Part shown: positions 4,199 through 58,300 of the stretch, in pieces
How positions within the stretch are numbered: position 1 is the stretch's first letter
How the letters are laid out: every line of letters starts with the position of its first letter
Assembly (NCBI GenBank): GCA_002269645.1
Contig: NIVC01000884.1
Coordinates: forward strand, 331,616-395,615
Origin: Macrostomum lignano
Lineage: Eukaryota
DNA: 64,000 nt
Reading direction: 5' to 3'
Made by a program: the position numbers and the translations under genes
The notes under the pieces: generated by a model
What the model was told of the DNA's origin: nothing
Seen by the model: only the letters and a program-made list of their open reading frames with translations
Database searches by the model: none

Positions 4199-14894
<10,696 letters not shown>

Positions 14895-17272: not shown

Positions 17273-17610
17273 GGGACCCGTAGCCCAGTGGTCTGGCGTG
17301 GCGCTTTGATGTGCCAGCGGCCCATGGGCTCGATTCCAAATGCAGTCACATACATTAATTTGGGGCTAAATTGGAGTCTCGGCTTGGCTCTGCTCGTGCA
17401 ATTAACGCCCTTGAAGGCCAACCCCCAAGGCACAGTGATGTGTACATGTCAAACGATAAATAAAGTTAGGGCCGCTGTACACTCCTGTGTGTGTGCCTGT
17501 GCGTATGACTGCGTACGTATCCGCGCGCTTGTGTGCCTGCTCAGGGGAGTCTGCGGAATGGGGTTGTGTGACAATGTCGCTTAAAGTGCACCCAGGTGCA
17601 CACAGTGTTT
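17273..17610 (+). mobile_element. tRNA-derived SINE, family A
   Basis: A-box TAGCCCAGTGG and B-box-like GGCTCGATTCC at the 5' end; homologous copies at 31572, 49480, 21930, 55900 and 36405. Confidence 0.8.
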
Positions 17611-20900: not shown

Positions 20901-21778
20901 CTGGCGGCCTGGCAGTGTTGAGTTTCGGGCGCGCGAATTTGAATGTGGACTTTCTAAGAATTCTATTAGAATACATTTGCAATAAAATACAAACCCAGAA
21001 CCCAGCAACTGAGGGTCTGGGAGGCTGGCCCAGCAACTGAGGGTCTGGGAGGCTGGCCCAGCAACTGAGGGTCTGGGAGGCTGGCCCAGCAACTGAGGAT
21101 CTGGGAGGCTGACTGCTCAGCCGCAATATCCCAAGAAACCCCAGGCTACTCCAGTTCGCAGCGGCAGCAGACCGCAATGCAGCTCACAACTTCCTCGGCA
21201 GACTTTTGAACGGCCTCGCTAGTAGACGAGTCGCCACCGGCGCTCTGAACTCGCCTGTGCCGCAGCACGGAGGTCGCCGTCGGGCCCGCATTCGACGTTG
21301 CGGTTGTCGCCGCCTTGGTTGCATCGTCGCTGACAGGCGCTGCTGCCTTGGACGCGGTAGCCGCCGAAGTCATGGACAGCAGCAGGGAGGACGGCAGCTT
21401 CGGCGGTGGCGGAGCCGCCAATCGGCGAATGCCGGTCACGTAGGCCTCAGGATCGAAGCCAGACTTGCCGAGCACCCGGCTGAGCTGGTCCGGGTGCAGC
21501 AAGCCGAACAGGTGCGCCAGAGAGTGGCGCCGGATTGCTTGGCGCCGACGTATGCGCCGAAGCCAACGCCGTCTGGAGCGCTGCTTTAACAGCGCGGATT
21601 CGGCAAACGACGGAGCTTCGTCTAATTCGTCTTTGTCGTCATCTTGATGGACTGCAGGCGGCGACAGCGGAGGAGGCGGCGGCGGAGGAGGCGGCATCTG
21701 CTGCTCCTCGGAATTACCGCCAGGGTTGCAGAGAGAATCTGCGCCGTCCCCGCTGCCGCCGTGAATTGCTGTTTGCAT
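17970..21778 (-). CDS. METTL14: m6A methyltransferase non-catalytic subunit METTL14; exons 21778-21188, 20953-20643, 20079-19776, 18542-17970
   Basis: [87 protein letters not shown] and [16 protein letters not shown]. Confidence 0.96.
18665..19705. repeat. Composite minisatellite (CCCCATAATTCATGACAAT / CCAAGCTTCACAAT modules) in METTL14 intron 3
   Basis: Tandem degenerate units of about 19 and 34 bp. Confidence 0.9.
20115..20600. repeat. Degenerate GGGAAGATT/GGGAAAATG-core minisatellite in METTL14 intron 2
   Basis: Repeating units of about 23 bp. Confidence 0.85.
21000..21115. repeat. 28-bp family minisatellite in METTL14 intron 1
   Basis: 4 copies of CCCAGCAACTGAGGGTCTGGGAGGCTGG. Confidence 0.9.
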
Positions 21779-21929
21779 GGGCGCTGCTTTCAGACATAAG
21801 TAAAATGTCAATATTGAAAACTTGATGAACAACTACTAACAGTAGTTAAATGCAGCAAAAAATAATCTAAAAAAACGAAATTCTGCCGATTCCACTGACT
21901 TCTGAGCAGAAGCAAGCGTGCCATTACTG

Positions 21930-22070
21930 TACGCAGGCGCGCACTCTACACGCGCTCACACAGGGTGTACAGCGGTCCTGACTTTATAATCGTAAGGCAT
22001 GTACACTCTCTGCGCCTTTGGGACTGGCACTCACGGGTTCGAATTGCACGACAACCCCAACGACTACATA
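21930..22070 (-). mobile_element. SINE family A fragment
   Basis: Shares GTGTACAGCGG-CCT-ACTTTAT-ATCGT-GGCATGTACAC with the copies at 31.7 kb and 49.6 kb. Confidence 0.6.
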
Positions 22071-22089
22071 TATATATTATTTCAATAGA

Positions 22090-22259
22090 ACATGTAGACA
22101 GGCCTCGGAGTGTCAATTGCAACAGCAAATTTTCAAACAGCAATCGACACGGTGTAAAGCCTGACAGCACAGCTGTTTAATATTGCATTGTTTAATCCTT
22201 CCAGGCCAGCTCATGATGGTAAAAAATAAGAAGGGCTGGCTTGGTACACACCAATGCAA
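22090..22259 (-). ncRNA. Box H/ACA snoRNA, predicted guide for the 18S uridine in CCUU-U-G-UACACAC
   Basis: 5' hairpin TGCATTG/CAATGCA plus CCAAGCCAGC/GCTGGCCTGG; H box ATATTA; 3' hairpin CAGGCT/GGCCTG plus GTGTCGATTGC/GCAATTGACAC; ACA 14 nt from the pocket. Homology to the second copy ends exactly at ACA. Confidence 0.8.
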
Positions 22260-22750
22260 AGCTGAGGTTTTGTAAGTTGCAACTTCATGAGGGTTCAGAT
22301 AAGAGGATAAACCTCAGTATGGATTAGGTGAGATTTACGGGATGGATTAATGGAGATTTGCATGGAGGATTATGGAGGATCTCGAGACTGGATGATGGGA
22401 GATTCTAGGACTATTTTATGGGAGATTTTCAGGCTAGATTATGGGAAACTTTGGGGTTAGGATCATGGGAGATACGTACTGAGACTGGATTAAGGAACAA
22501 TCTGGAGGTCGGTCTATGGAAAATCTTAAGGCTAGATTAGGACAGAAATATGAAATTAATAAAATCCATGCATTGCCTAACAATACCAGATAAGTGATTG
22601 AAAAATCAAACATTTAACAGAGTAGAACAGATTTTAAATTGAAATAATTTATTTATAAATGGCATTGAACCTGCTTAGATAAGCGAAAGCAAACAGGCGG
22701 ATTAGACAGGTAAAAACTACAGTCGACTTAAGACAATCTTAGCTAATAGC

Positions 22751-24034
22751 TCAGGTTATACGATAATTAGCATAGGCCCTGTTCTCTTCGCATGTTTTGT
22801 GCAATTGCAATTTGGCGTGCACAGCTTTGCCTTCATTGTTGCTGGCATTCACCAGCTCCCTGGCCAGCGAGCGGTACAGGTGCTCCTTGGTGCCGCGAAC
22901 GTTTGACGCAATTCGCAGAAATTTAAACGCTCGCATTTGACTCTCCGACTCGCGCAGCGGGCAGGGCACTTTGTATAGGAAGCCGCCGCGAAACACGTGC
23001 TTAATGATGAGCAGAGGTGAGCAGTTCTCAACGGCTTTGTGTATGACGCGAGTGGGGTCCACCTGCAGCGATGGTGAGACTTAGTTAGTGGAATTCTATG
23101 GCTGTAGAAAGACCGGGGATCTGGGAGGCTGGCCCAGCAACTAAGGATCTGGGAGGCTGTCTCAGCAGCTGAGGATCTGGGAGAGCGGTGGCCCAGGAAC
23201 TAAAGATCTGGGAGGCTGTCTCAGCAGCTGAGGATCTGGGAGAGCGGTGGCTCAGCAACTAAGGATCTGGGAGGCTGTCTCAGCAGCTGAGGATCTGGGA
23301 GAGCGGTGGCCCAGCAACTAAGGATCTGGGAGGCTGTTTCAGCAGCTGAGGATCTGGGAGAGCGGTGGCCCAGCAACTAAGGATCTGGGAGGCTGTCTCA
23401 GCAGCTGAGGATCTGGGAGAGCGGTGGCCCAACAACTGAGGATTTGGGAGAGCGGTGGCCCAACAACTGAGGATCTGGGAGAGCAGTGGCCCAGCAACCC
23501 AGGATTTGGGAGGCTGGCCCAGCAGATCAGGATCTATTTGGTTGGGAAGATCTCGAAGGATTTTCCTACACCCAAAGATTTCCAATCCCAGAGTGAACTA
23601 GCCTCAATGGACGCTTTCTCCTCAGGCGGCGCGGCGTTTCGCCGGGCCATCTGGATGTGCTTGATCTCTGCCATCATCTGGGTGAACACGTCGCGCAATT
23701 TGTCTCGCTGGCCGCATTTGACAAAGTGTCCAGCAAAGCTGTTTACAATAGGATCGTAGTGCACGCTGAATATCTGGTACTTGCCAGGCGGCCGGACAGC
23801 TTTAGTCCGACGCTCGTCAGTTTTGGGAATGTGCCGCGTGAACAGGTGCGGGTCCGGGTCGGTCTTGGTCCATTCCGGAAACGGGCCGCGCTTGCGAACT
23901 TTCTGTAGAGGCGATTTGTGCCGCACCGGCTGCTGGCTGAGAATGGCGGCGGCGGCAGCGGTTGTTGCGGCCGAGCCCGAGCGAGACTGACAGCCTAGCA
24001 GGCGGCTGGCATAGCCCAGTAGCAGCTGGGACAT
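22751..24034 (-). CDS. MRPS7: Mitochondrial ribosomal protein S7 (uS7m); exons 24034-23603, 23062-22751, with a GC-AG intron
   Basis: DPIVNSF, EEKASIE|VDPTRVIHKAVENCSP, YKVPCPL, LHKTCEENRAYANYR (uS7 motifs); N-terminus resembles a basic presequence. Confidence 0.9.
23115..23525. repeat. 28/30-bp family minisatellite in the MRPS7 intron
   Basis: Alternating variants of the CAGCAACTGAGGATCTGGGAG unit. Confidence 0.92.
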
Positions 24035-28098: not shown

Positions 28099-29387
28099 CG
28101 ACGCCCTGCTGCTGCTGCTGCTCCTGCTGCTCCTGCAGTTGCTGATTGGCCTGTCTAGTTAGCAACCGATGCCGCTTAGGTATATAGTGCTGCCAATGCA
28201 ATAGGATCTGCTCGTCAACTTCCCTAGCTAGGCCTGTTTTAGCGATGTCTTTGCGAAACTGCTGATGCTGCAGTAGATCCAGCAGCTGCAGACAGAATGG
28301 GTACTTGATGTACTTGACGTAGTCCGCCTCTTTCCAGTACTGCAGGTAGCTTAAGTAGTTGATGAATTCGCGTTTCTCAAAGAAGCGACGCTGGGCTAAG
28401 AAGTTCAGGTAATTCGGATTGCCCAGGCACTGGACGAACTCTAGTTCAACCTGCGGGGTGGGATGTGGTTGGGATGAATAAACATAGGCTGTTTAATCCT
28501 TTGTGTATCCATAGTTAGATGGGCGATTTTATGGGATAGATGGGCGATTCTATGGGGTAGATGGGCGATTCTATGGGGTAGATGGGCGATTCTATGGGGT
28601 AGATAGGCGATTCTATGGTATAGATAGGCGATTCTATGGTATAGATGGGCGATTTTATGGGATAGATGGGCGATTCTATGGGATAGATGGGCGATTCTAT
28701 GGGATAGATGGGCGATTCTATGGGATAGATGGGCGATTCTATGGGATAGATGGGCGATTCTATGGGATAGATGGGCGATTCTATGGTATAGATGGGCGAT
28801 TTTATGGGATAGATGGGCGATTCTATGGGATAGATGGGCGATTCTATGGGATAGATGGGCGATTCTATGGGATGATGGGCGATTCTATGGAGTAGATGGG
28901 CGATTCTATGGGGTAGATAGGCGATTCTATGGTATAGATAGGCGATTTTATGGGATGGATGGGCGATTCTATGGGATAGATGGGCGATTCTATGGTACAG
29001 ATAGGCGATTTTATGGGATCTATGGGCGATTCTATGGGGTAGATGGGCGATTCTATGGGGTAGATGGGCGATTCTATGGTAGAGATAGGCGATTTTATGG
29101 GATGGATGGGCGATTTTATGGGATGGATGGGCGATTCTTTGGGATAAATGGGCGATTCTATGGGAAAGGGATATGTATTCTGTTCCACAGGTTACAGCGG
29201 CCACCTGTACCCAAGTAGGTATTACCTGAAAGCGCTGTCGCTCTTCGTTATCAGCTCGAGTCTGCTGCAACAGCTGATGCTGGTGGTGCTGATGATGCTG
29301 GAGGCTGGCAGCGGCGGCTGCGGCGGAGAAGTGCGACGTCGGCAAATTGGAATGCGGCGGTAGCGGTGGCGGCTGGTTGGGCTTCAT
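28058..29387 (-). CDS. MED31: Mediator subunit 31; exons 29387-29226, 28450-28058 (184 aa)
   Basis: RFQ|VELEFVQCLGNPNYLNFLAQR, YLQYWKEADYVKYIKYPFCL and DEQILLHWQHY are SOH1/MED31 motifs. Confidence 0.95.
28515..29165. repeat. 21-bp minisatellite ATGGGCGATTCTATGGGATAG in the MED31 intron
   Basis: About 31 copies. Confidence 0.95.
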
Positions 29388-30039
29388 GTGCCGCGATTAA
29401 ATTATTTTGTCAATAAACAGTATTGATCTCAGCTTTTATTATTTACCATGAAATTAGTGCATCGACAGGTGCTTTTAGACTTAAGTTAATATAAGAAAAT
29501 AAGTATGAATAAAATACACCAAAACAAAAAAAATACAAATTAATAAATTCAACAGCAAGTTAAACAGCAAACTAGCAGGTGCCCAAATAGTGGCATATTT
29601 ATTTGTCATTAAGGTATTAACATAATTATTAGTTGTTCATATGAACAACTTCACACTATAATGTCCTAATTGAATTTGAATATTAATTACTATAGTGACA
29701 TTTCAAGGCAATAATTATATAATTATAGCATTGCAGAAAGCTATAACGCAAACAAAAAACTCACAGATGCGCAAGCACTGTTCTGCGCAACCAAAGTGAT
29801 TTTGTACAGTCACTGGGCCGATATGTGATGCGCCGAGTCGAACTTGTCTAATTAATTATTGGGTATTTTACGCTAAACAAGTTCATAAAAATATGAAAGA
29901 AACATAGCATTTGTGACGTTACTACACAATCTTGGATGTCCTAACATAATATACTTGCATATATCGCTATGAGTAATATAGTGTAGTTTTAGTTCCAGTC
30001 TCAGCGATTTCAATTGTCAATACAAACTACTTTTGCATT

Positions 30040-30122
30040 TATCTATCTACCAATCTACCTACCTACCTACCAACCTACCTACCTACCTATCTACCAACGC
30101 TCGTACGTACCTACTTTTCTAA

Positions 30123-30206
<84 letters not shown>

Positions 30207-30211
30207 TTATC

Positions 30212-30277
<66 letters not shown>

Positions 30278-30300
30278 CCTATCTAAGTATCTATCTAGCT
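30040..30300. repeat. (TCTA)n/(ACCT)n microsatellite
   Basis: Direct run. Confidence 0.95.
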
Positions 30301-30654
30301 ATTTATCTAGCTATTTTTGAAAAAAAAGGTTTTAGAAGATAACCAATAGCCAACATGCAGGTAGTGGAGACAGAGCTATATGGACCGAACAGGTACATAA
30401 AATTTAAAATAGAATGAAAGGGAGAAGAAGAGAAAATAAAAATGCAGCAATTTTTGACCAACAAAGTTTAGCAGAAACATACAAAACACATACAACAGCA
30501 ATGGGCATTGATAATAACACAAATTACGCGTAAATTATAATTTAAAATTTAAAACATCTTCCAAAAGCAACTCCGGTTAATGGCCGTTTATTCGCTTATC
30601 GTCAGGTGTTTCATTTTCGGCAGAATTGGACAATTATAAGTTTAAAGCTCAGGG

Positions 30655-31088
30655 CTGGCTCAGGGGCGATTCTTAGACTGATGACTCAGGGGCGATTCTT
30701 ATACTGATGACTCAGGGGCGATTCTTATACCGATGGCTCAGGGGCGATTCTTATACTGATGACTCAGGGGCGATTCTTATACTGATGACTCAGGGGCGAT
30801 TCTTATACTGATGACTCAGGGGCGATTCTTATACTGCTGGCTCAGGGGCGATTCTTATACTGCTGGCTCAGGGGCGATTCTTAGACTGATGACTCAGGGG
30901 CGATTCTTATACTGATGACTCAGGGGCGATTCTTATACCGATGGCTCAGGGGCGATTCTTATACTGATGACTCAGGGGCGATTCTTATACTGATGACTCA
31001 GGGGCGATTCTTATACTGATGACTCAGGGGCGATTCTTATACTGCTGGCTCAGGGGCGATTCTTATACTGCTGGCTCAGGGGCGATTT
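30655..31088. repeat. 26-bp minisatellite TCAGGGGCGATTCTTATACTGATGAC
   Basis: About 16 copies, just 3' of the SRSF7-like paralogue b. Confidence 0.95.
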
Positions 31089-31118
31089 TTAAAGCACTGT
31101 TATATATCTTTGATGCGC

Positions 31119-32190
31119 TTAGCGACTGCGACTGCTGCCCCGACTGCTGCTGCCGCCGCGATTGCCGCGGTCTCGACGACGATCGACGCTGCGACTGCGG
31201 CTTCGGCCACGACTGCGACTGCGGCTCCGGTCCCGATCGCGACCTCGGTTGCTTCGGCTACCGCCGCTGCCGCCACCCCGATCTCTTGTCGGACTGGGCG
31301 ATCGACCGCCGTACTTGCCGCGGCCGCCAAGGCCGCCTCGACTCGGACACTCGTAAGCGTAGTGGCCGCTGCGGCCACAGCTGTAGCACCGGTCGTCGCG
31401 CGGACTGCGGCCTCGAAAGCCACCGCCGCCTCCGCCACCGCCGCCGCCTCCGCCACCGCCGCCGCCTCCGCCGGCAGCTGCGGGACGCCTCTCGTGCTTG
31501 GCCAGTTCCAGTCTAAGTTGGAAAAAATAAACAGCTATTGTTGAATGTGTAAAGTCAAGGTGTACATCCTATGTGAGCGCGTGTATGAATGGCAATCGAT
31601 TTTCAAAGTACACACCCTGGCGCACTTTAAGCGACATTGTCACACAACCGGCGAGAGGCATTGCTGCCCATTCCGCCGACTCCCCTGAGCAGGCACACAA
31701 GCGCGCGGACACGTACGCAGTCATACGCACAGGTACACACTCACAGAGGAGTGTACAGCGGCCCTAACTTTATTTATCGTTAGTAGGCATGTACACTTCA
31801 CTGTGCCTTGGGGGGTTGGCCATCAAGGGCGTTAATTTCACGAGCAGAGCCAAGCCGAGATTCCAGTTTAACCCCAAATTACGTAATGTGACAGCAGTGA
31901 CTGCTGGAATCGAGCCTGGGCCGGTGGCACATCAGAGCACAGCGCTAGACCATTAGGCTACGGGAGTCTCCTTACCTAGCCCTTGCACCGCGTATTCTTG
32001 GCGGACTTCTAACGGCGTCTTCAGCGTCGCGGCGTTCTCGAAAAGTAACAAAAGCATAGGTGCCGCGACCGTGCACCCAGACAGATTCTAGTTCGCCGAA
32101 GCTGCGCAGCGCCGATTTAATGTCGCGTTCGTCCGCACCGCCTGGCAGATCGCCCACGTACACTCGGCGGCCCATCTCTTGGCGGGACAT
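31119..32190 (-). CDS. SRSF7/9G8-like SR protein, divergent paralogue b; exons 32190-31976, 31512-31119
   Basis: RRM (RRVYVGDL-TYAFVTF), poly-Gly, CCHC knuckle CYSCGRSGHYAYEC and RS tail; phase-2 GT-AG intron. Confidence 0.88.
31572..31968 (-). mobile_element. tRNA-derived SINE, family A (near full length) inside the SR paralogue b intron
   Basis: Minus-strand head GTAGCCTAATGG-GGCTCGATTCC; the body matches 17273-17610. Confidence 0.8.
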
Positions 32191-32351
32191 GATTGAATTC
32201 TAGCTGTGAGACTGCGGCTGCCGATTGAGTATAGTAGTAATATAGCGGTCTCAGTGCAGAAATGTGAGCGAACACATTTTGATAGAGCTACAGGTTAGTG
32301 AGAATAAGGAGCATTGCACATGGCTTAAGGGGTAGACGATTATCTAGATGA

Positions 32352-33005
32352 AGGGGGGGACTTCTGTTGGGGAATGGCTGAAAGGGGGAATTCTGTTGGG
32401 GAATGGCTGAAAGGAGGAATTCTGTTGGGGAATTGCTGAAAGGGGGAATTTTGTTGGGGAATGGCTGAAAGGGGGAATTCTGTTCGGGAATGACTGAAAG
32501 GGGGAATTCTGTTGGGGAATTGCTGAAAGGAGGAATTCTGTTGGGGAATGGCTGAAAGGGGGAATTCTGTTGGGGAATGGCTGAAAGGAGGAATTCTGTT
32601 GGGGAATTGCTGAAAGGGGGAATTCTGTTGGGGAATTGCTGAAAAGGGGAATTCTGTTGGGGAATGGCTGAAAGGATGAATTCTGTTGGGTGATTGCTGA
32701 AAGGAGGAATTCTGTTGGGGAATGGCTGAAAGGAGGAATTCTGTTGGGGAATTGCTGAAAGGGGGAATTTTGTTGGGGAATGGCTGAAAGGGGGAATTCT
32801 GTTCGGGAATGACTGAAAGGGGGAATTCTGTTGGGGAATTGCTGAAAGGAGGAATTCTGTTGGGGAATGGCTGAAAGGGGGAATTCTGTTGGGGAATGGC
32901 TGAAAGGAGGAATTCTGTTGGGGAATTGCTGAAAAGGGGAATTCTGTTGGGGAATTGCTGAAAGGGGGAATTCTGTTGGGGAATGGCTGAAAGGGGCAAT
33001 TCTGT
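32352..33005. repeat. 29-bp G-tract minisatellite GGGGAATTCTGTTGGGGAATGGCTGAAAG
   Basis: About 22 copies. Confidence 0.95.
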
Positions 33006-33711
33006 TGGGGGAATGGTTGAAGGAGATTCTGCAGAGGGAGTTATGGTGATATTTTTCTAAAGCATGGTTTTGAGGCGGTTCTTTTAATTAAAAAGAATAT
33101 TAGAGACTCTAATAGTTAAGTCCTTAATTATGGCCTAGTAGGCTTATTGATCTCAGTTAGGACACGAGAAAAAATAAAAAAAAGCATCGCAAAATGAACA
33201 CTAGATACGACAGACATGAAGAGAAATTCAGCGGAATTCCAAGGGTCAGTATTAAATATTTTATTTGATTAGTTTAATTTTTGTTTCGTAATATAGTTGC
33301 CGTGAATTATACATTTTTGGTTGAGCTAATAGTTAATAGAAAATAAAAAAATTACAGCGTAGAAGCGCGACGAGCATGCTACTTACAGTAATATAAATTG
33401 ACAGCATTGTCCATAAACGTGGCTATTTAAGGTTATAACAATTGACGGCAGCCAATGAAACTTCATAAATAAACTGTTTATTACTAATATTAAGAGAAGG
33501 CAGTATTGCCTACCGTGTAACAGACCAAAAAGTTTAATTAGTTAACTAAATAACTTGAACAGACACTTTATTCTTACACAACCGGGTCATAGTGCGGCAT
33601 TGCGAAATTATGACTCCGATTTAATTAATTATATAATAAAGTAATAATAATGACAACGACAAAGCCGACGGCTACTATTATTCCAGCCAGATAAAAACGC
33701 TACCAAGGGTC

Positions 33712-35445
33712 AAGGTAGCTTCTAGAGTAGCTTAATATGGCAATAGGGTAGCTTATAGAGTAGCTTAATATGGCAATAGGGTAGCTTCTAGAGTAGCTTA
33801 GATATGGTAATAGGGTAGCTTCTAGAGTAGCTTAGATATGGCAATAGGGTAGCTTCTAGAGTAGCTTAATATGGCAATAGGGTAGCTTATAGAGTAGCTT
33901 AGATATGGTAATAGGGTAGCTTCTAGAGTAGCTTAGATATGGCAATAGGGTAGCTTCTAGAGTAGCTTAATATGGCAATAGGGTAGCTTCTAGAGTAGCT
34001 TAGATATGGTAATAGGGTAGCTTCTAGAGTAGCTTAGATATGGCAATAGGGTAGCTTCTAGAGTAGCTTAATATGGCAATAGGGTAGCTTATAGAGTAGC
34101 TTAATATGGCAATAGGGTAGCTTCTAGAGTAGCTTAGATATGGTAATAGGGTAGCTTCTAGAGTAGCTTAGATATGGCAATAGGGTAGCTTCTAAAGTAG
34201 CTTAATATGGCAATAGGGTAGCTTCTAGAGTAGCTTAGATATGGTAATAGGGTAGCTTCTAGAGTAGCTTAATATGGCAATAGGGTAGCTTATAGAGTAG
34301 CTTAATATGGCAATAGGGTAGCTTCTAGAGTAGCTTAGATATGGTAATAGGGTAGCTTCTAGAGTAGCTTAGATATGGCAATAGGGTAGCTTCTAGAGTA
34401 GCTTAGATATGGCAATAGGGTAGCTTATAGAGTAGCTTAATATGGCAATAGGGTAGCTTCTAGAGTAGCTTAGATATGGTAATAGGGTAGCTTATAGAGT
34501 AGCTTAGATATGGTAATAGGGTAGCTTCTAGAGTAGCTTAATATGGCAATAGGGTAGCTTCTAGAGTAGCTTAGATATGGTAATAGGGTAGCTTCTAGAG
34601 TAGCTTAGATATGGCAATAGGGTAGCTTCTAGAGTAGCTTAATATGGCAATAGGGTAGCTTATAGAGTAGCTTAATATGGCAATAGGGTAGCTTCTAGAG
34701 TAGCTTAGATATGGTAATAGGGTAGCTTCTAGAGTAGCTTAGATATGGCAATAGGGTAGCTTCTAAAGTAGCTTAATATGGCAATAGGGTAGCTTCTAGA
34801 GTAGCTTAGATATGGTAATAGGGTAGCTTCTAGAGTAGCTTAATATGGCAATAGGGTAGCTTATAGAGTAGCTTAATATGGCAATAGGGTAGCTTCTAGA
34901 GTAGCTTAGATATGGTAATAGGGTAGCTTCTAGAGTAGCTTAGATATGGCAATAGGGTAGCTTCTAAAGTAGCTTAATATGGCAATAGGGTAGCTTCTAG
35001 AGTAGCTTAGATATGGTAATAGGGTAGCTTCTAGAGTAGCTTAGATATGGCAATAGGGTAGCTTCTAGAGTAGCTTAATATGGCAATAGGGTAGCTTCTA
35101 GAGTAGCTTAGATATGGTAATAGGGTAGCTTCTAGAGTAGCTTAGATATGGCAATAGGGTAGCTTCTAGAGTAGCTTAATATGGCAATAGGGTAGCTTCT
35201 AGAGTAGCTTAGATATGGCAATAGGGTAGCTTCTAGAGTAGCTTAATATGGCAATAGGGTAGCTTCTAGAGTAGCTTAGATATGGCAATAGGGTAGCTTC
35301 TAGAGTAGCTTAATATGGCAATAGGGTAGCTTCTAGAGTAGCTTAGATATGGTAATAGGGTAGCTTCTAGAGTAGCTTAGATATGGCAATAGGGTAGCTT
35401 GTAGAGTCAGTTCAATATGGTAATAGGGTAGCTTCTAGAGTAGCT
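33712..35445. repeat. 33/34-bp minisatellite GGGTAGCTTCTAGAGTAGCTTAGATATGGCAATA
   Basis: About 51 near-identical copies. Confidence 0.96.
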
Positions 35446-35615
35446 GAACACGGTAATAGGTTAGGTACTGTTTCTCATCGGGCTGGCCATAATAGGTAGG
35501 CTGCTTCGAGAGCAGCTCCTTACACTGTCTATAAAAGCCTGCAGTTGGTTCAGTTTATCCAACATTCAAACCTGACGCCGCTCTTCGCCGCTCCCTCGCT
35601 ACATGCTGCAGCTGT

Positions 35616-36122
35616 TCAGCTCCTAGATCGGGACCGGGAGCGAGTCGAGCGCGACCTCGACCGACGCCGCCGATCGTCGTAGCGGCCGCCGCGATCGCGG
35701 TCCCTGTCCCTAGACCGGTCCCTGTCGCGGTCGCCGCCGCGCAGTCGGGGACACTCGCGAGCGAAATGACCGGGCCGGCCGCACGAGTAGCAGCCGCCGC
35801 CTCGGCCTCCGCCGCCGCCGCCGCCGCCACCGAAGCCGCCCTGGCCGGGTCGGCGGGCTCGCGACCGGCCGCTGGACAGTTCAACTCGAGCCCGAACTCC
35901 GCAGATGACGGTGCCGTCTAGATCGCGTACAGCGTCGCCAGCGTCGCGCGAATCTTCAAATACAACAAAGGCAAAGCCGGGCGGATTGCGGGCAACCCAA
36001 ACGGAGCGGACGGCGCCGTAGTGCCGGAACGCTTTCTCAATTTCTGACTCCGAAGCGTCGCGCGGCAGGTCGCCGATGTACACTTTGCAGCCGTCGTCGT
36101 CGTCGTAACGTTTGGTTGACAT
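35616..36122 (-). CDS. SRSF7: SRSF7/9G8-like SR protein, paralogue a (intronless CDS, 168 aa)
   Basis: [47 protein letters not shown] zinc knuckle and RS tail. Confidence 0.88.
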
Positions 36123-37970
36123 TATTTAGCTAGCTTAAAACCTTGAAAAACCATGGCGAGAGGTGGGCAATGGGGGGTGTTAAGCTGTTTTTAGTATGAG
36201 GGCAGAAGTCCTTGTCAGAGGCGAGTTACGGAGATAATTTAAGATGGAAACACTACAAATAGTAAGAGAGAACAAGATAAAAGTGCAGAGAAGCGTAGGA
36301 AATTAAAAAAAAATATTACGGGGTAAATTTCGATCAAATATGGCCTTTATCAAGTAAGCTATTAAATTTCAGACAGTTTTTGAGCAATGGGTTAACGATA
36401 ACTGTGAGTGCCTGTGTACACAGTATTGACGCACTTGTATGTGCTCAGGAGCCAGCAGAATGGGCAGAATCGCCTCACAGCCCTGGTTGTGGGACCGACG
36501 TCGCCGAAGGCGTTGCGCCAGGATGCTCACAAGACGCTTGCAATTAATATTGAAGCATTAGTTGAAAATCACTAATTGTCCACCACACTGCCACCAAAAA
36601 ATCTAGGCCACAGAAGAAGTCAGAAAGAGGAGATTAACAGAGAAACAGATAACAACGTAGACGGATATGAAGTGCATTAAAAAACTTTGGTAGAAATTCT
36701 GCAACACGTTATTAATTTTCATCACAAAATATAGAATTATCCTCGATAAATGAAGGCAAAGATAAGCACGGTTCTTTAAGCACTACAATAGTGTAGCTCC
36801 CCAACTGAGTTTTCATGTTTAACAGTGCAAATTGTATTTCTGCTTTTCCTTGGGTATAAAAGGCTCTCTAAACGAATTTTCTTTGAAGATTCTGCACATA
36901 TCAGTAGATAGAGATAAAACTGCGCAACCAATAAACTTATTGAACTACAGAGCAGCAACTGCAGCTTAATTTAGAGGGGTAATGCAACTTTATTATTTTT
37001 AATAATCTCACTCAAAAAAATCTAAAAATCTCAAGAGTTCTAAATCTTATAGCATGCTACTTATTTAGTAGCATATAAGAAACTAAGCATAATCCTTCGG
37101 ATGTTTCCTTTTCAACAACTCCCTAAGGGTAGACGCTTTACAATAAATAAAATTATTGCAGTCAACTTACCGCGCGAAAAGTGAGCGCGAATCAGAGCAG
37201 GCAGAGAGGGGGAGAGGGGGGATAGGAAGGTCGGTTTTTTTAGCAGACTTTAAACGACGGGCGCAGCGCCAATATCGCCGAGTATTTTTAAACATTCTGT
37301 CTAGCCATCGAGACGGTGGTAGGAACTGTGATGGAAAAGCCGAGACGAAGGAATTAGCAACTGTCGCTGAACGCACTCGATCCGCCTCTCTCCCCACTCT
37401 CTCTTTGCTCTCGGGTGTGCCACTGACTCGACAGTCGGGGGGATTAACTCTTAGCATTAACTTATAACGATGAGGCGGCTGGGCTGTAGTAGTGTAGTAG
37501 GTGTGAGGGTGCAAACTATTGTGGCGAGCTGAGAGCTGCAGGCTGAAGCGCTGAGCTGAGCTTTAATTAGCTGTGTCGAGAGGTTCATTTTTGCTGCTTT
37601 TACTGCTGCTGCTGTGCTGCAAGCTGAGCTGCTGTTAGAAGATTTTTGCTGCTTTGCTGCTGCTGCGCTATTGCTTGTTGCATAAGGCGACACATTAGAC
37701 GAATCTCTTCTTGCCGCATTCGAAGAAAAAAGACAGCGCGGGCATACAAAATAGCATGCAATATGAAAATAAAAGCAGGTAAACGCGTACAAAAATCTAC
37801 TGAAATGCAGATGTAAATAAAGAATGACTACAGTTTTCTATACAGTATTTTATGTACAATATAATGATAATCAAGCGCGGATATGAAAGACTATAACAAA
37901 CACATAAAACGCCGAAATATAACCCTATGAAAATGGTATCTGGGCCAAGAAGCGTTGCATGACTTGCAAC

Positions 37971-38142
37971 CATGCTTGGGCGCAACCCAGGGACTCACCC
38001 TGCCGTTTCTACTGGCAACACACACATGTAAGTCGCTATTGGACGGAATAGTAGTCACGTGACTGCTCTCAGCCAATAGTGACTTACATGTGTGTGTTGC
38101 CACTAGAAACGGCCGGGCGACTCCCAAGGTTGCGCATGCATG
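37971..38142. mobile_element. Palindromic hAT-type MITE
   Basis: 8-bp TSD CTTGCAAC (37963-37970 and 38143-38150); termini resemble the CATGCGCAAC TIR; 41-bp internal arms with 2 mismatches around GTCACGTGAC. Confidence 0.8.
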
Positions 38143-39239
38143 CTTGCAACTCTTAGACGACTCTTAAAACCGAAACGTCTTGATAAAAGTGGCCAAAAAG
38201 ACCGTCAGAGTCGCCTAAGAGTCAATTTGAGGCGTTTTATTGTTGGCGACTTTAAAACTACTTTGGAGCAGCGCAAGCGACTTTTAGGCGCTTTCATAAT
38301 GAGTCTATGAATTCATCACTATGCGTCACTATGAATTCAGAATCGCATTTCACATTGATGACAACTCTATTTAGTCTACTTGAGTTGATAGAAAGTTAAT
38401 AAACGACTCTTAAAACAAATTTTCAACTCTCTTACGATTTTTGCAACTCACGTGATGCGCTCGTGACTCAACAGTTGCCTGTACAGTAGTTTGAGTCATT
38501 TAGAAAAGTATAAATGTATATAATACAAATAAACGCCAATAAGAAAAGCCTGAAAAATAAGCGAATAATCTCGCTGACGTGTTTCTCTGCCTGACAAGTT
38601 TATTCGTTAAAATTTTCATTTTCCGATGCCACTGATAGTCTTGGACCCTCTTCCGGAGAGATTTGGTCTTCTGCCTTCTCGCTTAACGACTGGGACGCAG
38701 ATTGTTGAAAGCATAAATATATATATATATATTTCTAAGAAATATTAATACATCAGAATATGTACTTAAATCGATACTGCTTATCTAACATTGAATTATC
38801 AAGTTCACTTTGTACTATATATAATTTTTCTTACTAATATGATTTAAAGTTAAAAGCAAAATCTCCCGACTGGTTCGATCAAACAAATAGTAAAAATGGA
38901 TTTATATTTATTTCATTCATCAACTCATTAGCCAGGCGTGTATCTATATAGCTCACATGACTATATTTCCACTATAATAATAGTGCGTAGTGTAATGAAA
39001 CAGTTGGACACAGGTGACCAAACGGTCAAGTCAGGATGACAATTTGTTGATTATATAAGCAACATTATTCTTATTTTAAAATGCAATTTCAACAAGCTAG
39101 CGTGGGCAGTTACACATACTGATCAGGTGATCAGGTATTTCAAATTCAACTTAAAATACTAAAACTTTAACGAATGGCTCTCCATAACAAGGCATTAGCA
39201 CAATTTTAGGACCATGAAGATCTTTACTAGCGTCCTTCA

Positions 39240-40550
39240 GTTCTTCAATGAGCCCCTTAAGGTCCTTTAATGAGCTCATTCCGGCCCTTTAATAATCTCC
39301 CTCAGGTCCTTCAATGAGCTCCTTCAGGTCCTTTAATAATCTCCCTCAGGTCCTTCAATGAGCTCCCTCAGGCCCTTTAATAATCTCCCTCAGGTCCTTC
39401 AATGAGCTCCTTCAGGTCCTTTAATAATCTCCCTCAGGTCCTTCAATGAGCTCCCTCAGGCTCTTAATAATCTCCCTCAGGTCCTTTAATGATCTGCCTC
39501 AGGTCCTTCAATGAGCTCCCTCAGGTCCTTCAATGATCTCCCTCAGGTCCTTTAATAATCTCCCTCAGGTCCTTTAATGATCTCCCTCAGGTCCTTCAAT
39601 GAGTTCCCTCAGGTCCTTTAATAATCTCCCTCAGGTCCTTTAATGAGCTCCCTCAGGTTCTTTAATGATCTCCCTCAGGTCCTTCAATGAGTTCCCTCAG
39701 GTCCTTTAATAATCTCCCTCAGGTCCTTTAATGAGCTCCCTCAGGTTCTTTAATGAGCTCCCTCAGGTCCTTCAATGAGCTCCCTCAGGTTATATGATAA
39801 TGAGCTCCCTCAGGTCCTTCAATGAGCTCCCTCAGGTTATATGATAATGAGCTCCCTCAGGTCCTTCAATGAGCTCTCTCAGGTTATATGATAATGAGCT
39901 CCCTCAGGTCCTTCAATGAGCTCCCTCAGGTTATATGATAATGAGCTCCCTCAGGTCCTTCAATGAGCTCTCTCAGGTTATATGATAATGAGCTACCTCA
40001 GGTCCTTCAATGAGCTCCCTCAGGTTATATGATAATGAGCTCCCTCAGGTCCTTCAATGAGCTCCCTCAGGTTATATGATAATGAGCTCCCTCAGGTCCT
40101 TCAATGAGCTCTCTCAGGTTATATGATAATGAGCTCCCTCAGGTCCTTCAATGAGCTCCCTCAGGTTATATGATAATGAGCTCCCTCAGGTCCTTCAATG
40201 AGCTCTCTCAGGTTATATGATAATGAGCTCCCTCAGGTCCTTCAATGAGCTCCCTCAGGTTATATGATAATGAGCTCCCTCAGGTCCTTCAATGAGCTCC
40301 CTCAGGTTATATGATAATGAGCTCCCTCAGGTCCTTCAATGAGCTCTCTCAGGTTATATGATAATGAGCTACCTCAGGTCCTTCAATGAGCTCCTCAGGT
40401 TATATGATAATGAGCTCCCTCAGGTCCTTCAATGAGCTCCCTCAGGTTATATGATAATGAGCTCCCTCAGGTCCTTCAATGAGCTCCCTCAGGTTATATG
40501 ATAATGAGCTCCCTCAGGTCCTTCAATGAGCTCCCTCAGGTTATATGATA
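39240..40550. repeat. 22-bp/47-bp higher-order minisatellite (AATGAGCTCCCTCAGGTCCTTC with TTATATGAT variant)
   Basis: Tandem array that shifts from monomer to dimer organisation. Confidence 0.95.
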
Positions 40551-40578
40551 AGAAACGTCCCTTTCCAAGCGAACAACT

Positions 40579-47320
<6,742 letters not shown>

Positions 47321-47452
47321 TGTTATGACGCTTAATTGGCTGGAAACATTTTGCAGGGTGAGGTGGAGGGCAATAGGTTAATATTTGGAATATGTGGCCC
47401 GATAGTATCCCAAACCTAGGCTAGAATTTACATGGTCAACGAGGGTAGCGTT

Positions 47453-47755
47453 GGCCCAGCAACTAAGGATCTGGGAGGCTGGCCCAGCAACTAAGGATCT
47501 GGGAGGCTGGCCCAGCAACTGAGGATCTGGGAGGCTGGCCCAGCAACTAAGGATCTGGGAGGCTGGCCCAGCAACTGAGGATCTGGGAGGCTGGACCAGC
47601 AACTGAGGATCTGGGAGGCTGGACCAGCAACTGAGGATCTGGGAGGCTGGCCCAGCAACTGAGGATCTGGGAGGCTGGACCAGCAACTGAGGATCTGGGA
47701 GGCTGGACCAGCAACTGAGGATCTGGGAGGCTGGCCCAGCAACTGAGGATCTGAT
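47453..47755. repeat. 28-bp family minisatellite upstream of the MRPS22 ATG
   Basis: About 11 copies. Confidence 0.93.
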
Positions 47756-49089
47756 AGGCTGGCGGTGGCCCATTGTGAGTATTGGAATAGTGTAGTCTCC
47801 ACAGTAAAAATAATAAGCAGTTAAATGTACGGCACTTATTAGTAAGAGCAGATAGCGCAAATCAGGCATACAAATTTTATTCTCCTTGGCCCTGAGAATG
47901 ACATTAGCTAATTATAGATAGAATTATGTTACACAAACATGCAAAGCTGGTGTCTAATGAAAGCTAAAGTTATAGGCCTTGTACAATCACACAGTTTATG
48001 CACAGAGGGCTACATAGCAACGGGCAGGTAGAAATAGAAAGCCAAAGGAGATTCAAGAAAAATAAATATACGAGTGCACAAATATTAGGATTAGATATAT
48101 GTTGTTGTTACCACTAAAAGTAGGAGAGCAGAGGACTCAAAATTGAAAAAAAACGGACTTATTATCAAGACTTTTGACAAAAAATCTTTTGTCTACAAAA
48201 CAGCGTAATTTATCATAAAAAATTATAGAGAAAATAATAGGTTTTTCTTTAAGATAAAGTCAACACTACAACAAAGACCTGTCTAGAACACAGCGCTGTT
48301 CTGAAATCATCGTACAGTAGAACTTAATCCATTAAATCCACTCTAATAAGACAATTTAAAAAAGAACTCACAATGAGCATAGATAGAAACTATTAGTGTT
48401 AAAGCACAACTCAGCATTATGATTGAGGATAGACAGTCAACATACCTATATATACTTTAAGAAATGAAATCCTATTGACAGAATTGCACTTCTTTATGAT
48501 GTACAACTTGTTTCAAATAAAATTGTGCGCATTAGACCATCTGTCTGCTGAGGAAAACTACTAGCATAGAAATCGTAAGTAGTCTGGTCCGCTCTAAGCT
48601 AGATATTATAAATTAAAATATACAATGTTAGTTCTAGCGACTGGACTAGCAGAGCAAAGGCACACGGGCACGCGGCAACAAGGTACTACTAGTACTACTA
48701 AAAAAGATACTACTACAAGTAGGCGAAAGTAGTTTTTTAATTCTATTTTTTTACAAAATCTCAGTAAACTCTGCGCAACGGCTGGGCGGCAAAAAAGCAG
48801 GTAAAAAGACGATGAGTTGCAAAATAGCTAAGGAAGCACTGCAATAAAAAAAATAATAAATGTATGCATAGTAACAATCCAAGCTTTAACATCATTGAAA
48901 CAGAACCAAAACGAGTGGTTCAATTTTGACACTCGGCTGCTGATCCAAGGCACTTCACCCCGAGCACAAGAAAACAACAGCAGAACAAAGAAAACATTAA
49001 TTATTAGTAACAGTAAGTAACCTCAATAACAATAGAATTAGTCAATTGTTCTTCCCGAAAAACTGCCCTCCAACCCGTTAGAATTTCAA

Positions 49090-54225
<5,136 letters not shown>

Positions 54226-54439
54226 CTGAAATCGACATGAAACTTTAGCTTACTATGAGAATGAGATTCTATAATTTTCATTTTTCTAAGTCCTTCTATG
54301 AAAGGCAGGCAGCAGTTAGGGTCACAAATGCAGTCGACCTTCTGTTGTTCTGGGGTCATGACAGTGACTACTTACTACTGACTCTAATGTCCACTACTGC
54401 GTCTACATTATCTAATGTCCACTACAGCGTCTACATGAT

Positions 54440-54790
54440 CTAATGTCCACTGACTATTGTGTCTACTGACTCCACCGTCTACTGACTATTGTGTCTACTG
54501 ACTCCACTGTCTACTGACTATTGTGTCTACTGACTCCACTGTCTACTGACTATTGTGTCTACTGACTCCACTGTCTACTGACTATTGTGTCTACTGACTC
54601 CACTGTCAACTGACTCCACTGTCTACTGACTCCACTGTCAACTGACTCCACTGTCAACTGACTCCACTGTCAACTGACTCCACTGTCTACTGACTCCACT
54701 GTCTACTGACTCCACTGTCTACTGACTCTACTGTCTACTGACTCTACTGTCTACTGACTCCACTGTCTACTGACTCCACTGTTTACTACT
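54440..54790. repeat. 16/33-bp minisatellite GTCTACTGACTCCACT
   Basis: Tandem copies; related to the 41.2-kb array. Confidence 0.9.
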
Positions 54791-55353
54791 GTGTCCAGAC
54801 TCCGATGTTGAAAAGCATCATCTCTCAGACATGCACTCACTCTGTGCTACAGCCATTGGCCCTCATGGGCGTTAAGTTAACACTCCGAACCCCGAACTGA
54901 AAACTATATTTTACTACTAGCTACTAAATATAAATTAGAAAACTCTTATTTAAAGAAACACAGTTGGTTACAACTCGTAACAGCCTCGGATACAGAAAGT
55001 TGTACTATTAATTGAAATCGGTCGATATACTGCATTAGCAACATAGAAATATTTGAATTATTAGTCAACACACAAGCGCATATAGGTTTATAACGGCAAC
55101 ATTACAAACACAACATTATAGATGCTGGGAAACGAACATAAAAACTAAAGATAGTAAGATACTAATGTTGACGCAAGCAGACAATCCATGTCTTTAGAAT
55201 AGGGGATATAAGTGCTAGTCTAGGAGATATTATTTTTAGTTTGCCTCAATGTCAGACCGGTAACTGCTAACTAAACAGATGTTAGGAAAACTTTGACGCA
55301 TTTGAAACCAATATGAATTAGTAGTTAATAAAATAGTAATTATAGCAATCAGT

Positions 55354-58300
55354 TCAAAATCGCCTCGAAGAGGACACGTCGTAGCCGTGACTAGCCGATC
55401 CGCCAAGGAACATTGGCGCACCGCCGCCCGATCCAGAGCCGGTTGAACCGCCAGCACCAGGCATAGCAACCCGGCCAGACATGTAGGCCGCCGCTGCAGA
55501 CGGTGGAGGCTGATGATGATGATGCGCCAGATGATGCGGCGGCAGCTGGGGCGGCTGCGGCGGCCGGGCGGAGCTGACGCCGGCAATGCCAGTGGGCAAA
55601 GTTGGAGCTGTAGGCAGGTGGGCGCCAATTAAGCTACCAGCTGCTCCGCTGCCGCCAGTCCAGGCCAGGGTTGGCCCGCTAGGCTGCTGCGGCTGCTGAG
55701 CAGAGAAATGATGACCGCCAGCGCCTCGCTGATGCTGACGCTGAGGCTCGCCGCGGTGATAGTAGCGCTGCGACTGCTGATCTGGCTCGGGCTGGCGGCC
55801 TCGGCTATAGTAATAAAATGGCAATAAACTCTTAGTACTATCAGTCCAGTAGCAAGAAGGAAAGGTTTAAGCTATTTTTTGTTATGAAAACAAATTCAGT
55901 CGTAGCCGTTTTGTACATCAGCCAAGGAGGCGGCGCTCTGATGTGCCAGCGCAGCGGCCCAGGCTCGATTCCCAGTGCAATTAACACCCTTGAGGGCCAG
56001 TCCCTAAACTACAGTAAATTGTGCATGCCTAACGATAAATATTTATTAATTATCTTATCATAGTACTTTACACTACACGAAAATTAGCTGAGTAGCTGTG
56101 GAAAAACCCTCATGAAGGAAGCAATAATACTCAGTATATAACTCAAACACTGACAATAATAATTTCAGTTTCACCCAACATAACAGCATGCATGCATCAG
56201 GCTTGATATAGTCGAAGAGGCCGACGGACTCCGATGCTGAACACCTTTTCTGAAGAGTCTAGTTAAAAGCAAGTTTAAAAATGCTTTAAGAAACCACTGG
56301 CAAAATTCCCAAAGCCGCGCGGGTCTGTGGACCGTGCTGACCGCAACACACTGTGCCTTTGACTTTTGCGATCGAAATTACTTTGCATTACCTATGCTGG
56401 CGCTGCTCCTGGCCACCGTGATAATCCCGACTTCTGTCGCGCTCGCCATCCCGACGGGAGCCGCCGCCGCCTCCTCCTCTCGAATCGTAGGCTGATCGCT
56501 TACGATCGTCCCGCTCGCGGCTAGAGTTGCGCTTCCTAGACATTCGATCGCGCGCCTCTCGATCGTGGCGTTCGCGCGCCTCCCGTTCAGCGCGCTCTTG
56601 TCGCTCGCGTTCGGCGCGCTCTCGTTCGACGCGTTCGCGCTCTTTAGCAGCGGCCACGACTGCCGCCTCGCGTTCGGCGCGTTCGCGTCGATCTCGCTCT
56701 TCGCGCGCTTTCCGCTCGCGCTCCCAGCGTTCGCGCGCCTCACGTTCGGCCCGTTCACGTCGCTCGCGCTCCTCGCGCTGGCGTCGCTCAGCCTCCAGGT
56801 GCTCCTTCATTCGTCTGTACTCTTCTTTCTCCCGTTCCAGTCGGCGTTTCTCTTCAATCAGAGCTCGCTCTTGTTCACGTTTCATTTCTTGCTTCTCGCG
56901 CTCCAGATTGGCCTTCTCTTTTTGCAATAGGTATTGCATCTGTTCGAACTTTTCGCGGGTGCGCGCCTCTTCGCGCCTCTTCCATTCTTCTAGTTGGCGG
57001 CGTTCGCGTTCTAGGCGCACTTTCTCGTCTTCTGCGGCCTTCTTGGCGTCCCTGGCAGCCAAAAGGTGACGCAAATCGTCTTCTCGGACGCCTTTAGCGC
57101 TGGCCGAATGGTCGCTGCCAAGCAGTGCATTTCTAGCGCCGGAACTAGGAGCGCCAGCTTGGCGCCGGATTCCGCTATTCTCCATCGAGGTGCGCCGCTC
57201 TCGCGGAGGATTAGACCGGGCAGACGTGTGAGCGCCAGGTCGATGCTGATGATGCGCCTCGGCAAGTCTGTCCCGACTTGTTCCTGTCCGCGCCCGACTG
57301 TCCCGATCCCGACTGCTGGCAGTTCGTCCTCGGTTATTGCGGTCCCGACTGCCGCCGCTGGACCGTCGCCGATCACCCTGCAAAGCACTGGGGACTCTAC
57401 TAATATTACCGGCGCCGTCGGCGCTACCGCGTCGACGATCGCTACCGGCGCTCCGGCGCTGATCAGTAGACGGTCGGCCGTGCTGCTGACGCTGCCTCGA
57501 TCGGCTTCTGGCGCTGCCGGCGCGTCCGCTAATTGGAGATCGAGAGCGGCCGCCGCTGCCGCCGCGCGACATTGAAGCCGAAGCCGCCGCTGTCCGCGCC
57601 GACTCCTGGTTAGAAGAGAACGACGTAATTGGCAACTTGATAACGCCGGGCTTTGGCTTATTGTCGGCAGTCTTTGTCGTCGATGTCGTCTCTAACTTCG
57701 ACGAGCCAGTGGTTGCAGACTTAGTCGCATCGGTAGTCGCTTCCGCTGATGAAGACGACTTAGTAGTAGTCAATGATGCTGACTCTGCTTTTTTAGTAGT
57801 AGATGGCTCCGAATTGGCCCGGTCAACGTAGATTGTCCGACCATGCAAGCTAGTCTTGTGCAGACTCTTCTGGCATTTGTCAGCCTCGTCAGCCGATGAC
57901 ATCTGTATGAGGCCGTAGCGCTTCTGATTGGATCCTTTAGCGTTGACAACAATTTTAGCAGCGAGAACTTTGCCGTGCTTGCTAAATAGCTGTTTGAGAT
58001 CCACGGCCTTTGTACTGCTGTGGATGTTGCTAACCCACAGGCTTTTGCTGTCTGCAAGAACGAAATTTAAATATTTTGGGCGAATAGTTTTTCTTCCCCA
58101 GCGTTTCCTGTCTTTTTTTACCGACGTTTCGAACTCAAAGACAAGACAGAGCAATAAGTTTCGTCAATTTATTTACTTTGAAGACTTGACATGCGCAACA
58201 AAGCGTTGATTTAATAGTTGCAGATTGTCCTTGTTGTTATCATGTCAATTAGAGCTGTGGAAACTTGAATAAAAATTATTACCACAAGAATTGGATCCCA

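Follow-up and report, generated by a model that had tools for sequence, protein, structure and literature searches.

A predicted box H/ACA snoRNA of Macrostomum lignano with a guide complementary to helix 28 of 18S rRNA, found between MRPS7 and METTL14 and in an intron of MRPS22

A stretch of 64 kb of Macrostomum lignano DNA was analysed as a whole, and is called here the window. On its minus strand, the segment running from 22259 to 22090 is probably one gene copy of a genuine M. lignano box H/ACA snoRNA, belonging to a family of at least two loci. Judged on its fold, its boxes and its complementarity to rRNA, we consider it likely that this family is a genuine H/ACA snoRNA aimed at a uridine of 18S helix 28; our confidence that the copy at 22259-22090 (copy 1) is itself expressed is lower. 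An initial annotation of this segment had described two hairpins with internal pockets, an H box and a terminal ACA. All of these were found on the minus strand, where the segment folds as hairpin-hinge-hairpin-tail with both boxes present. The elements of copy 1 are the following.

22090..22259, minus strand: predicted mature box H/ACA snoRNA, copy 1, 170 nt (from the fold, the coordinates and the paralogue alignments)
22261..22093, minus strand: block identical between paralogues (from the paralogue alignments)
22183..22259, minus strand: 5′ hairpin (hairpin I), with an 8-bp lower stem, a pocket, an upper stem and an apical loop of 24 nt
22259-22252 with 22190-22183, minus strand: lower stem of hairpin I, perfect, UUGCAUUG with CAAUGCAA
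22251-22245 and 22200-22191, minus strand: strands of the 5′ pocket, GUGUGUA and AAGGAUUAAA
22245..22252, minus strand: 5′ strand of the 5′ pocket, (G)GUGUGUA, pairing with 18S UACACAC(C), 3′ of the target U-G
22197..22200, minus strand: AAGG in the 3′ strand of the 5′ pocket, pairing with 18S CCUU, 5′ of the target U
22244-22235 with 22210-22201, minus strand: upper stem of hairpin I, 10 positions with one A.C mismatch
22183..22178, minus strand: H box AUAUUA (ANANNA), invariant in all three copies
22099..22163, minus strand: 3′ hairpin (hairpin II), with a 5-bp lower stem, a pocket, an 11-bp upper stem and a 19-nt loop
22163-22159 with 22103-22099, minus strand: lower stem of hairpin II, CAGGC with GCCUG
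22158-22151 and 22109-22104, minus strand: strands of the 3′ pocket, UUUACACC and UCCGAG
22093..22095, minus strand: ACA box, 14 nt after the upper stem of hairpin II
22092-22090, minus strand: tail UGU

The H box overlaps the last base of the hairpin I lower stem. Hairpin II is followed by UCU, ACA and UGU in succession, which sets the ACA 3 nt past the lower stem. The distance from upper stem to box is 14 nt for hairpin II (to the ACA) and 17 nt for hairpin I (to the H box); the latter value, already pointed out in the initial annotation, is correct and is the same in all three copies described below. Compared with the published pocket-to-box range of 13-16 nt (PMC1636440), the 3′ pocket falls within the range and the 5′ pocket 1 nt above it. 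The 14-nt stretch between the H box and hairpin II, as well as the apical loops of 24 and 19 nt, are also larger than the human norms given in PMC1636440. A CAB-like UGAG straddles the border between loop and stem in hairpin I, and none is present in hairpin II.

The full 176-nt fold had an energy of -52.8 kcal/mol (z = -3.04), and 0 of 200 shuffled sequences were equally stable. Both hairpins were present in the RNAfold MFE and centroid structures, hairpin I at -22.8 kcal/mol (z = -1.5) and hairpin II at -29.4 kcal/mol (z = -3.5). A custom H/ACA scanner was then applied to both strands of the 64-kb window. Its requirements were an ANANNA and an ACA separated by 50-95 nt, each with its pocket at a distance of 13-18 nt, and two hairpins without branches, each with 12 bp or more and an energy of -15 kcal/mol or lower. 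The copy-1 element was its sole match. As the scanner also gave 8 lenient matches in 22 Markov-simulated 64-kb windows (about 0.36 per 64 kb), none of them as stable, the fold alone is only moderately unusual, and is suggestive rather than decisive. The guide and H box taken together, GTGTGTA-N30-60-AAGG-N10-14-ANANNA, are expected 0.05 times per window, and only 2 of 3000 random guide pairs, tried at every U of a complete rDNA unit, formed 4+7 Watson-Crick pairs or more. On the plus strand, a C/D snoRNA was considered and rejected: AUGAUGG and CUGA lie there 54 nt apart, but no terminal stem is formed, and the sequence is sense to 18S.

The 5′ pocket had been proposed to be complementary to a segment of 18S rRNA, and indeed 4 + 8 uninterrupted Watson-Crick base pairs are formed with the 18S sequence CCUU-U-G-UACACACC. 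Both pocket strands were as originally read in sequence and position, except that the first G of GGTGTGTA, taken there as a free guide base, closes the lower stem; the guide consists of 7 free nucleotides plus this one. Competing sites were searched for in at least 120 metagenomic contigs containing CCCTTTGTACACACCGCCCGTCGCTACTACCGATTGAATG, 574 kb in total, in which the genes around the target are matched by Rfam SSU_rRNA_eukarya, with 5.8S and LSU alongside. Among the matches listed in these 574 kb, this site was the only conserved one that fits the 5′ pocket, the other matches being sporadic and rich in G.U pairs. The occurrence of the target in 118 of 120 loci is by construction, given that the 40-mer selecting the loci contains it, and shows only the lack of a competing site.

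For Psi1692 of human 18S rRNA, PMC9610020 gives the snoRNABase assignment, U70/SNORA70. The bridging oligonucleotide used for Psi1692 in PMC9610020 starts at GTACACACCGCCCGT, directly 3′ of the pseudouridine, which places the latter on the U directly 5′ of GUACACACC. The U left unpaired by the 5′ pocket is thus the one that corresponds to human Psi1692, the SNORA70 site, in keeping with the initial proposal. Psi1692 lies in helix 28, at the junction of neck and head (PMC10227372). The reverse assignment is found in PMC7760958, with 18S U1692 given to SNORA64 and 28S U4975 to SNORA70. We regard this swap as a slip, because the SNORA70 reverse primer of the same paper implies a guide GGU(A)GUGUA, a sequence that we infer from the primer. 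As a predicted guide for the helix-28 uridine, the M. lignano element has the bipartite complementarity, with a spacing outside 13-16 nt.

Comparison of the window with itself revealed a second copy, on the same strand, in sense orientation within intron 1 of MRPS22. It is present in two parts.

46025..46066, minus strand: copy 2, 5′ part, with the lower stem, the 5′ guide, the 5′ strand of the upper stem and the start of the loop
42933..43057, minus strand: copy 2, 3′ part, with the rest of hairpin I, the H box, hairpin II and the ACA (42936-42938)
43058..46024: 2,967-bp insertion that interrupts copy 2 within apical loop I, 10 nucleotides of that loop being lost

The insertion has a GA-rich, low-complexity core (44410-45717). 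A 30-kb stretch of the Mlig_3_7 contig NIVC01001170.1 (L122 and L123) is collinear with window positions 57314..28805 at 89-99% identity; the orthologue of copy 1 would lie less than 1 kb past the end of L123. It carries an intact copy at L122 10982-11150, in the same intron, where the insertion is absent. The intact copy in this homologous contig indicates that the insertion is specific to one haplotype, homeologue or assembly. Exon 1 of MRPS22 extends from 47320 to about 46930, exon 2 occupies about 42130-41930 and exon 3 about 41157-40579, and the MRPS22 protein encoded here shares 98% identity with BOX15_Mlig020281g1 of Macrostomum lignano. The two loci share a strand, at a distance of 21-24 kb. 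Location in sense orientation within an intron of a ribosomal-protein-type gene is the classic metazoan arrangement for a snoRNA.

Satellites with a 23-nt unit containing GATTAGGG (telomere-like TTAGGG) flank both copies (46178-46760, 42193-42761 and 22368-22446), the one beside copy 1 (22368-22446) being degenerate. That related satellites are found next to both copies suggests that satellite and snoRNA were duplicated as one segment. A telomerase-RNA-like arrangement, with an H/ACA domain downstream of CCCUAA, was rejected, since the CCCUAA comes from the 23-nt satellite, present as some 25 repeats inside an intron.

Comparison of the copies provides what is, in our view, the strongest evidence for the predicted snoRNA. 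With apical loop I set aside, 144 positions were compared; copies 1 and 2 disagree at 1 of them, copy 1 and the L122 copy at 3, and copy 2 and the L122 copy at 2, which gives an identity of 98-99% among the three (99.3% for copy 1 versus copy 2). The 5′ flanks of the two loci (139 nt) are 64-70% identical, and their 3′ flanks (100 nt) about 47%, which amounts to unalignable. The block of identity extends from 2 nt outside the lower stem to the ACA. Changes in apical loop I consist of a 5-nt deletion and the large insertion. Apical loop II has one A/U difference; at window position 22131 the RNA of copy 1 has an A of its own, and the intronic copies a U. There is in addition one A-to-U change in the distal 3′ pocket, and one C-to-U change in a stem, where a G-C pair becomes G.U. 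All 33 of 33 stem pairs are kept in the three copies, and the 5′ guide, the H box and the ACA are invariant. Compensatory covariation is absent in the three copies because they are too similar. Such a pattern is typical of a structured guide RNA under purifying selection, and gene conversion confined to the unit could resemble it. Dozens of copies decaying in the manner of a transposon were not seen: two loci were found in about 95 kb (the 64 kb of the window and about 30 kb of the homologous contig), with a body far better conserved than its flanks (98-99% versus 47-70%), which sets the unit apart from a repeat, SINE or satellite. A further hairpin just 5′ of the snoRNA (CUGAGGUUU...AAACCUCAG) was tried as an additional conserved element and rejected, as it is not kept in copy 2, whose z there is -0.16.

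We turn now to the surroundings of copy 1. It lies between two coding regions of the minus strand.

22751..24034, minus strand: MRPS7 coding region, upstream of copy 1, with exons 24034-23603 and 23062-22751
21146..21778, minus strand: METTL14, first coding ORF upstream of the conserved exons, with its first ATG at 21778

This position, already given in the initial annotation, was confirmed at the protein level: MRPS7 matches Pfam Ribosomal_S7 at 6.6e-23, and METTL14 matches METTL14 proteins at about 1e-109, the best of them only about 67% identical. A search for orthologous loci with the MRPS7 protein found nothing. The single MRPS7 intron (23063-23602, minus strand) has a GC-AG splice pair (GAG/GCTAGT ... 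GCAG/GTG) and is mostly composed of a 28-31-nt satellite; once spliced, MRPS7 has 247 aa, the same length as annotated on the Mlig_3_7 contig. Between about 17970 and 58154, the minus strand carries SAFB-like, LATS/NDR kinase, MRPS22, SRSF7-like, Med8, MRPS7 and METTL14 genes. Some 400 nt separate Med8 from MRPS7, which lies downstream of it. With several spacers this short, the row of genes is operon-like by the criterion published for M. lignano.

The spacer between MRPS7 and METTL14 is 972 nt long, about 410 nt of which are repeats; the degenerate 23-nt satellite at 22368-22446 and a SINE-like repeat at 21883-22051 occupy part of it. Copy 1 begins 492 nt downstream of the stop codon of MRPS7 (22751) and some 390 nt beyond the sole AATAAA (22653-22648), and lies 312 nt ahead of the first ATG in the METTL14 frame (21778). 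The snoRNA is followed, about 220 nt further 3′, by a pyrimidine-rich ...UUUUUUUAG (AG) whose last base is 21867. Genes of M. lignano are taken as belonging to one operon when the repeat-corrected spacer is below 1000 bp (PMC8629364), so that by distance the MRPS7-METTL14 pair qualifies as intra-operonic. No match to the trans-splice (SL) acceptor motif [T/C]TNCAG (PMC8629364) was found between the snoRNA and the METTL14 ATG when the sequence was read by eye. No intron was recognised around copy 1, as had been noted at the start.

Several repeats of the window were recorded along the way. Copies of the SINE-like repeat, which has a tRNA-like GGTTCGAAT box, are 72-80% identical and are found at 21883-22051, 17394-17562 (minus strand), 31664-31843, 49571-49641 and 55975-56036, the first of these 39 nt 3′ of the snoRNA. 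A tRNA beside copy 1 was rejected, as ARAGORN finds none and the GGTTCGAAT segment belongs to this repeat. A 28-nt satellite, CCCAGCAACTGAGGRTCTGGGAGGCTGG, occupies introns and spacers of several genes (21001-21111, 23117-23535, 47452-47763 and 9388-10214) and gives rise to long spurious ORFs. An intact-looking mariner/Tc1-type transposase ORF of 372 aa is present at 6603-7721 on the plus strand.

If the predicted snoRNA is produced, its RNA would be transcribed from the minus strand within a longer Pol II transcript, bound co-transcriptionally by dyskerin/Cbf5, Nop10, Nhp2 and Gar1, and trimmed by exonucleases to the base of hairpin I on one side and 3 nt past the ACA on the other. The 5′ pocket would then pair with 18S CCUU and UACACACC, leaving U-G unpaired at the base of the upper stem, and the U of helix 28 equivalent to human U1692 would be isomerised to pseudouridine. 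The least certain step is the release of copy 1, for which a read-through or polycistronic Med8-MRPS7-METTL14 transcript, an intron in the METTL14 5′-UTR, or a promoter of its own may be envisaged; the initial annotation had proposed an intercistronic spacer or an unrecognised UTR intron. In the most specific version, copy 1 would be functional and matured from the intercistronic spacer of an SL trans-spliced operon Med8-MRPS7-METTL14, backing up an intronic paralogue that is polymorphic for an insertion. Once MRPS7 had been polyadenylated and METTL14 had received its SL by trans-splicing, the discarded spacer, or outron, would be trimmed back to the snoRNP as a debranched intron is. We know of no description of operon-spacer biogenesis for animal snoRNAs, and this scenario is offered tentatively, as a rather unlikely one.

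It may also be that the family is real and copy 1 a silent duplicate, co-duplicated with its 5′ flank and satellite, the copy in the MRPS22 intron being the working gene. Several features go in this direction. The intronic copy has a host gene of the canonical sort and is uninterrupted in the Mlig_3_7 contig, whereas copy 1 is in no identified intron, well past the only polyadenylation signal after MRPS7, with a SINE-like repeat inserted 39 nt beyond its predicted end. Against it, copy 1 has no disabling change and remained 99.3% identical to copy 2 while the 5′ flank decayed to 64%; moreover, in the chromosome version represented by the window it is the intronic copy that is broken, and the 972-nt spacer is short enough to be intra-operonic (PMC8629364). 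On these grounds we judge a silent copy 1 unlikely.

The 3′ pocket predicts CUCGGA-U-N-GGUGUAAA as a target, or GGUGAAAA for the L122 variant, in which one guide base of this pocket differs. It had been described as an orphan, and it stayed so: no conserved rRNA target was found for it among 63 complete 18S and 16 near-complete 28S sequences. For CUCGGA-U-Y-GG there is a fit to the helix-44 motif ...CUCGGAUYGG..., which is semi-conserved, occurs in several rDNA contigs and in human, and lies about 54 nt downstream of the first target; the remaining six bases of this candidate site fall in a variable stretch. The 3′ pocket would either serve a lineage-specific site or be idle.

This pocket, with its canonical 14-nt spacing, enters a second alternative, in which the RNA is of the H/ACA class and its complementarity to 18S is unused owing to the 17-nt spacing, the RNA acting instead through the orphan 3′ pocket, on a scaRNA-type target, in processing or as a chaperone. 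The departure of the 5′ pocket from the 13-16 nt rule and the CAB-like UGAG at the loop/stem border of hairpin I would both suit such a role. A bipartite match of 12 Watson-Crick base pairs to a known pseudouridine site is, however, very unlikely to be accidental, and it is the 5′ guide that is invariant in all copies whereas the 3′ pocket varies. Besides, six unpaired nucleotides in the 3′ pocket strand could absorb the extra nucleotide. An RNA that leaves its 18S match unused is, in our opinion, quite improbable.

Scans with Rfam did not identify the element. At the gathering score, no family matched anywhere in the whole window, and permissive scans (E ≤ 10) of stretches of 801 nt and 191 nt gave no match to SNORA70 (RF00156). 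The permissive matches were at chance level only: SCARNA1 (16.4 bits, E = 1.6), C/D families and PK-BYV. The snoRNA was missed by annotation because no covariance model covers it. By its structure and boxes the element is predicted to belong to the box H/ACA class, and homology to SNORA70 is not supported.

The last alternative, that there is no RNA gene here but chance hairpins or a repeat unit linked to the flanking 23-nt satellites, draws on the chance rate of lenient H/ACA-like folds in random sequence, on the related satellites beside both copies and on the lack of an Rfam match, and is very improbable in view of a unit that is much better conserved than its flanks and is bounded by the stem base and the ACA, of its presence at only two loci in the 95 kb or so compared, and of the guide match combined with the boxes.

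We therefore retain a family of genuine H/ACA snoRNAs directed at the helix-28 uridine as the preferred reading, and if it is confirmed, flatworms would possess a guide for the helix-28 pseudouridine next to the decoding region, implying that the modification seen as human Psi1692 predates the split between Platyhelminthes and vertebrates. Annotation by Rfam covariance models misses such guides in distant phyla, and a targeted search by guide sequence and fold can find them. The pair of loci constitutes a small natural experiment on snoRNA redundancy, and on operon spacers as snoRNA hosts in a trans-splicing animal. The gene itself would be of an ordinary kind, and the general picture of snoRNA biology is unchanged.

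Among known systems, the M. lignano element is the predicted functional counterpart of vertebrate SNORA70/U70, the box H/ACA guide to which the same uridine of 18S (human Psi1692) is attributed (PMC9610020). The SNORA70 guide GGU(A)GUGUA implied by the published qPCR reverse primer is close to GGUGUGUA of the M. lignano element. No sequence or structure homology with SNORA70 was detectable (covariance model, E ≤ 10), and the M. lignano guide is uninterrupted, belongs to the 5′ hairpin and lies 17 nt from the H box. SNORA70, about 135 nt long, is also shorter than the predicted M. lignano RNA of about 170 nt, and its human host is RPL10, against an MRPS22 intron and the MRPS7-METTL14 spacer here. 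Our literature search found no snoRNA annotation for M. lignano. In Drosophila, snoRNA:Psi18S-1820 possibly guides the equivalent site, assuming that 1820 corresponds to human 1692, as we estimate from rRNA lengths. This snoRNA exists by name in PMC12239590. Neither a counterpart nor such a guide was found at the MRPS22 locus of the trematode Calicophoron or at the METTL14 locus of Lingula, which is not syntenic, so that the host associations look lineage-specific.

The element shares with the intron-encoded H/ACA snoRNAs of metazoans the hairpin-hinge-hairpin-tail organisation, the two boxes (ANANNA and ACA) and a bipartite guide that leaves U-N unpaired. As with them, one copy is found in a sense-oriented intron of a housekeeping, ribosome-related gene. 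It differs from them in that copy 1 is intergenic, and in that the linker and apical loops exceed the human limits (PMC1636440). Finally, multi-copy snoRNA families arise by segmental duplication or retroposition (PMC8178906), and like these the M. lignano family comprises two loci, one of which was disabled by an insertion in one haplotype or assembly. In contrast to retroposed families, the M. lignano copies share a 5′ flank and a satellite, with neither a poly(A) tail nor a target-site duplication. The shared flank and satellite point to a DNA-based duplication rather than to a retrocopy of the mature RNA.
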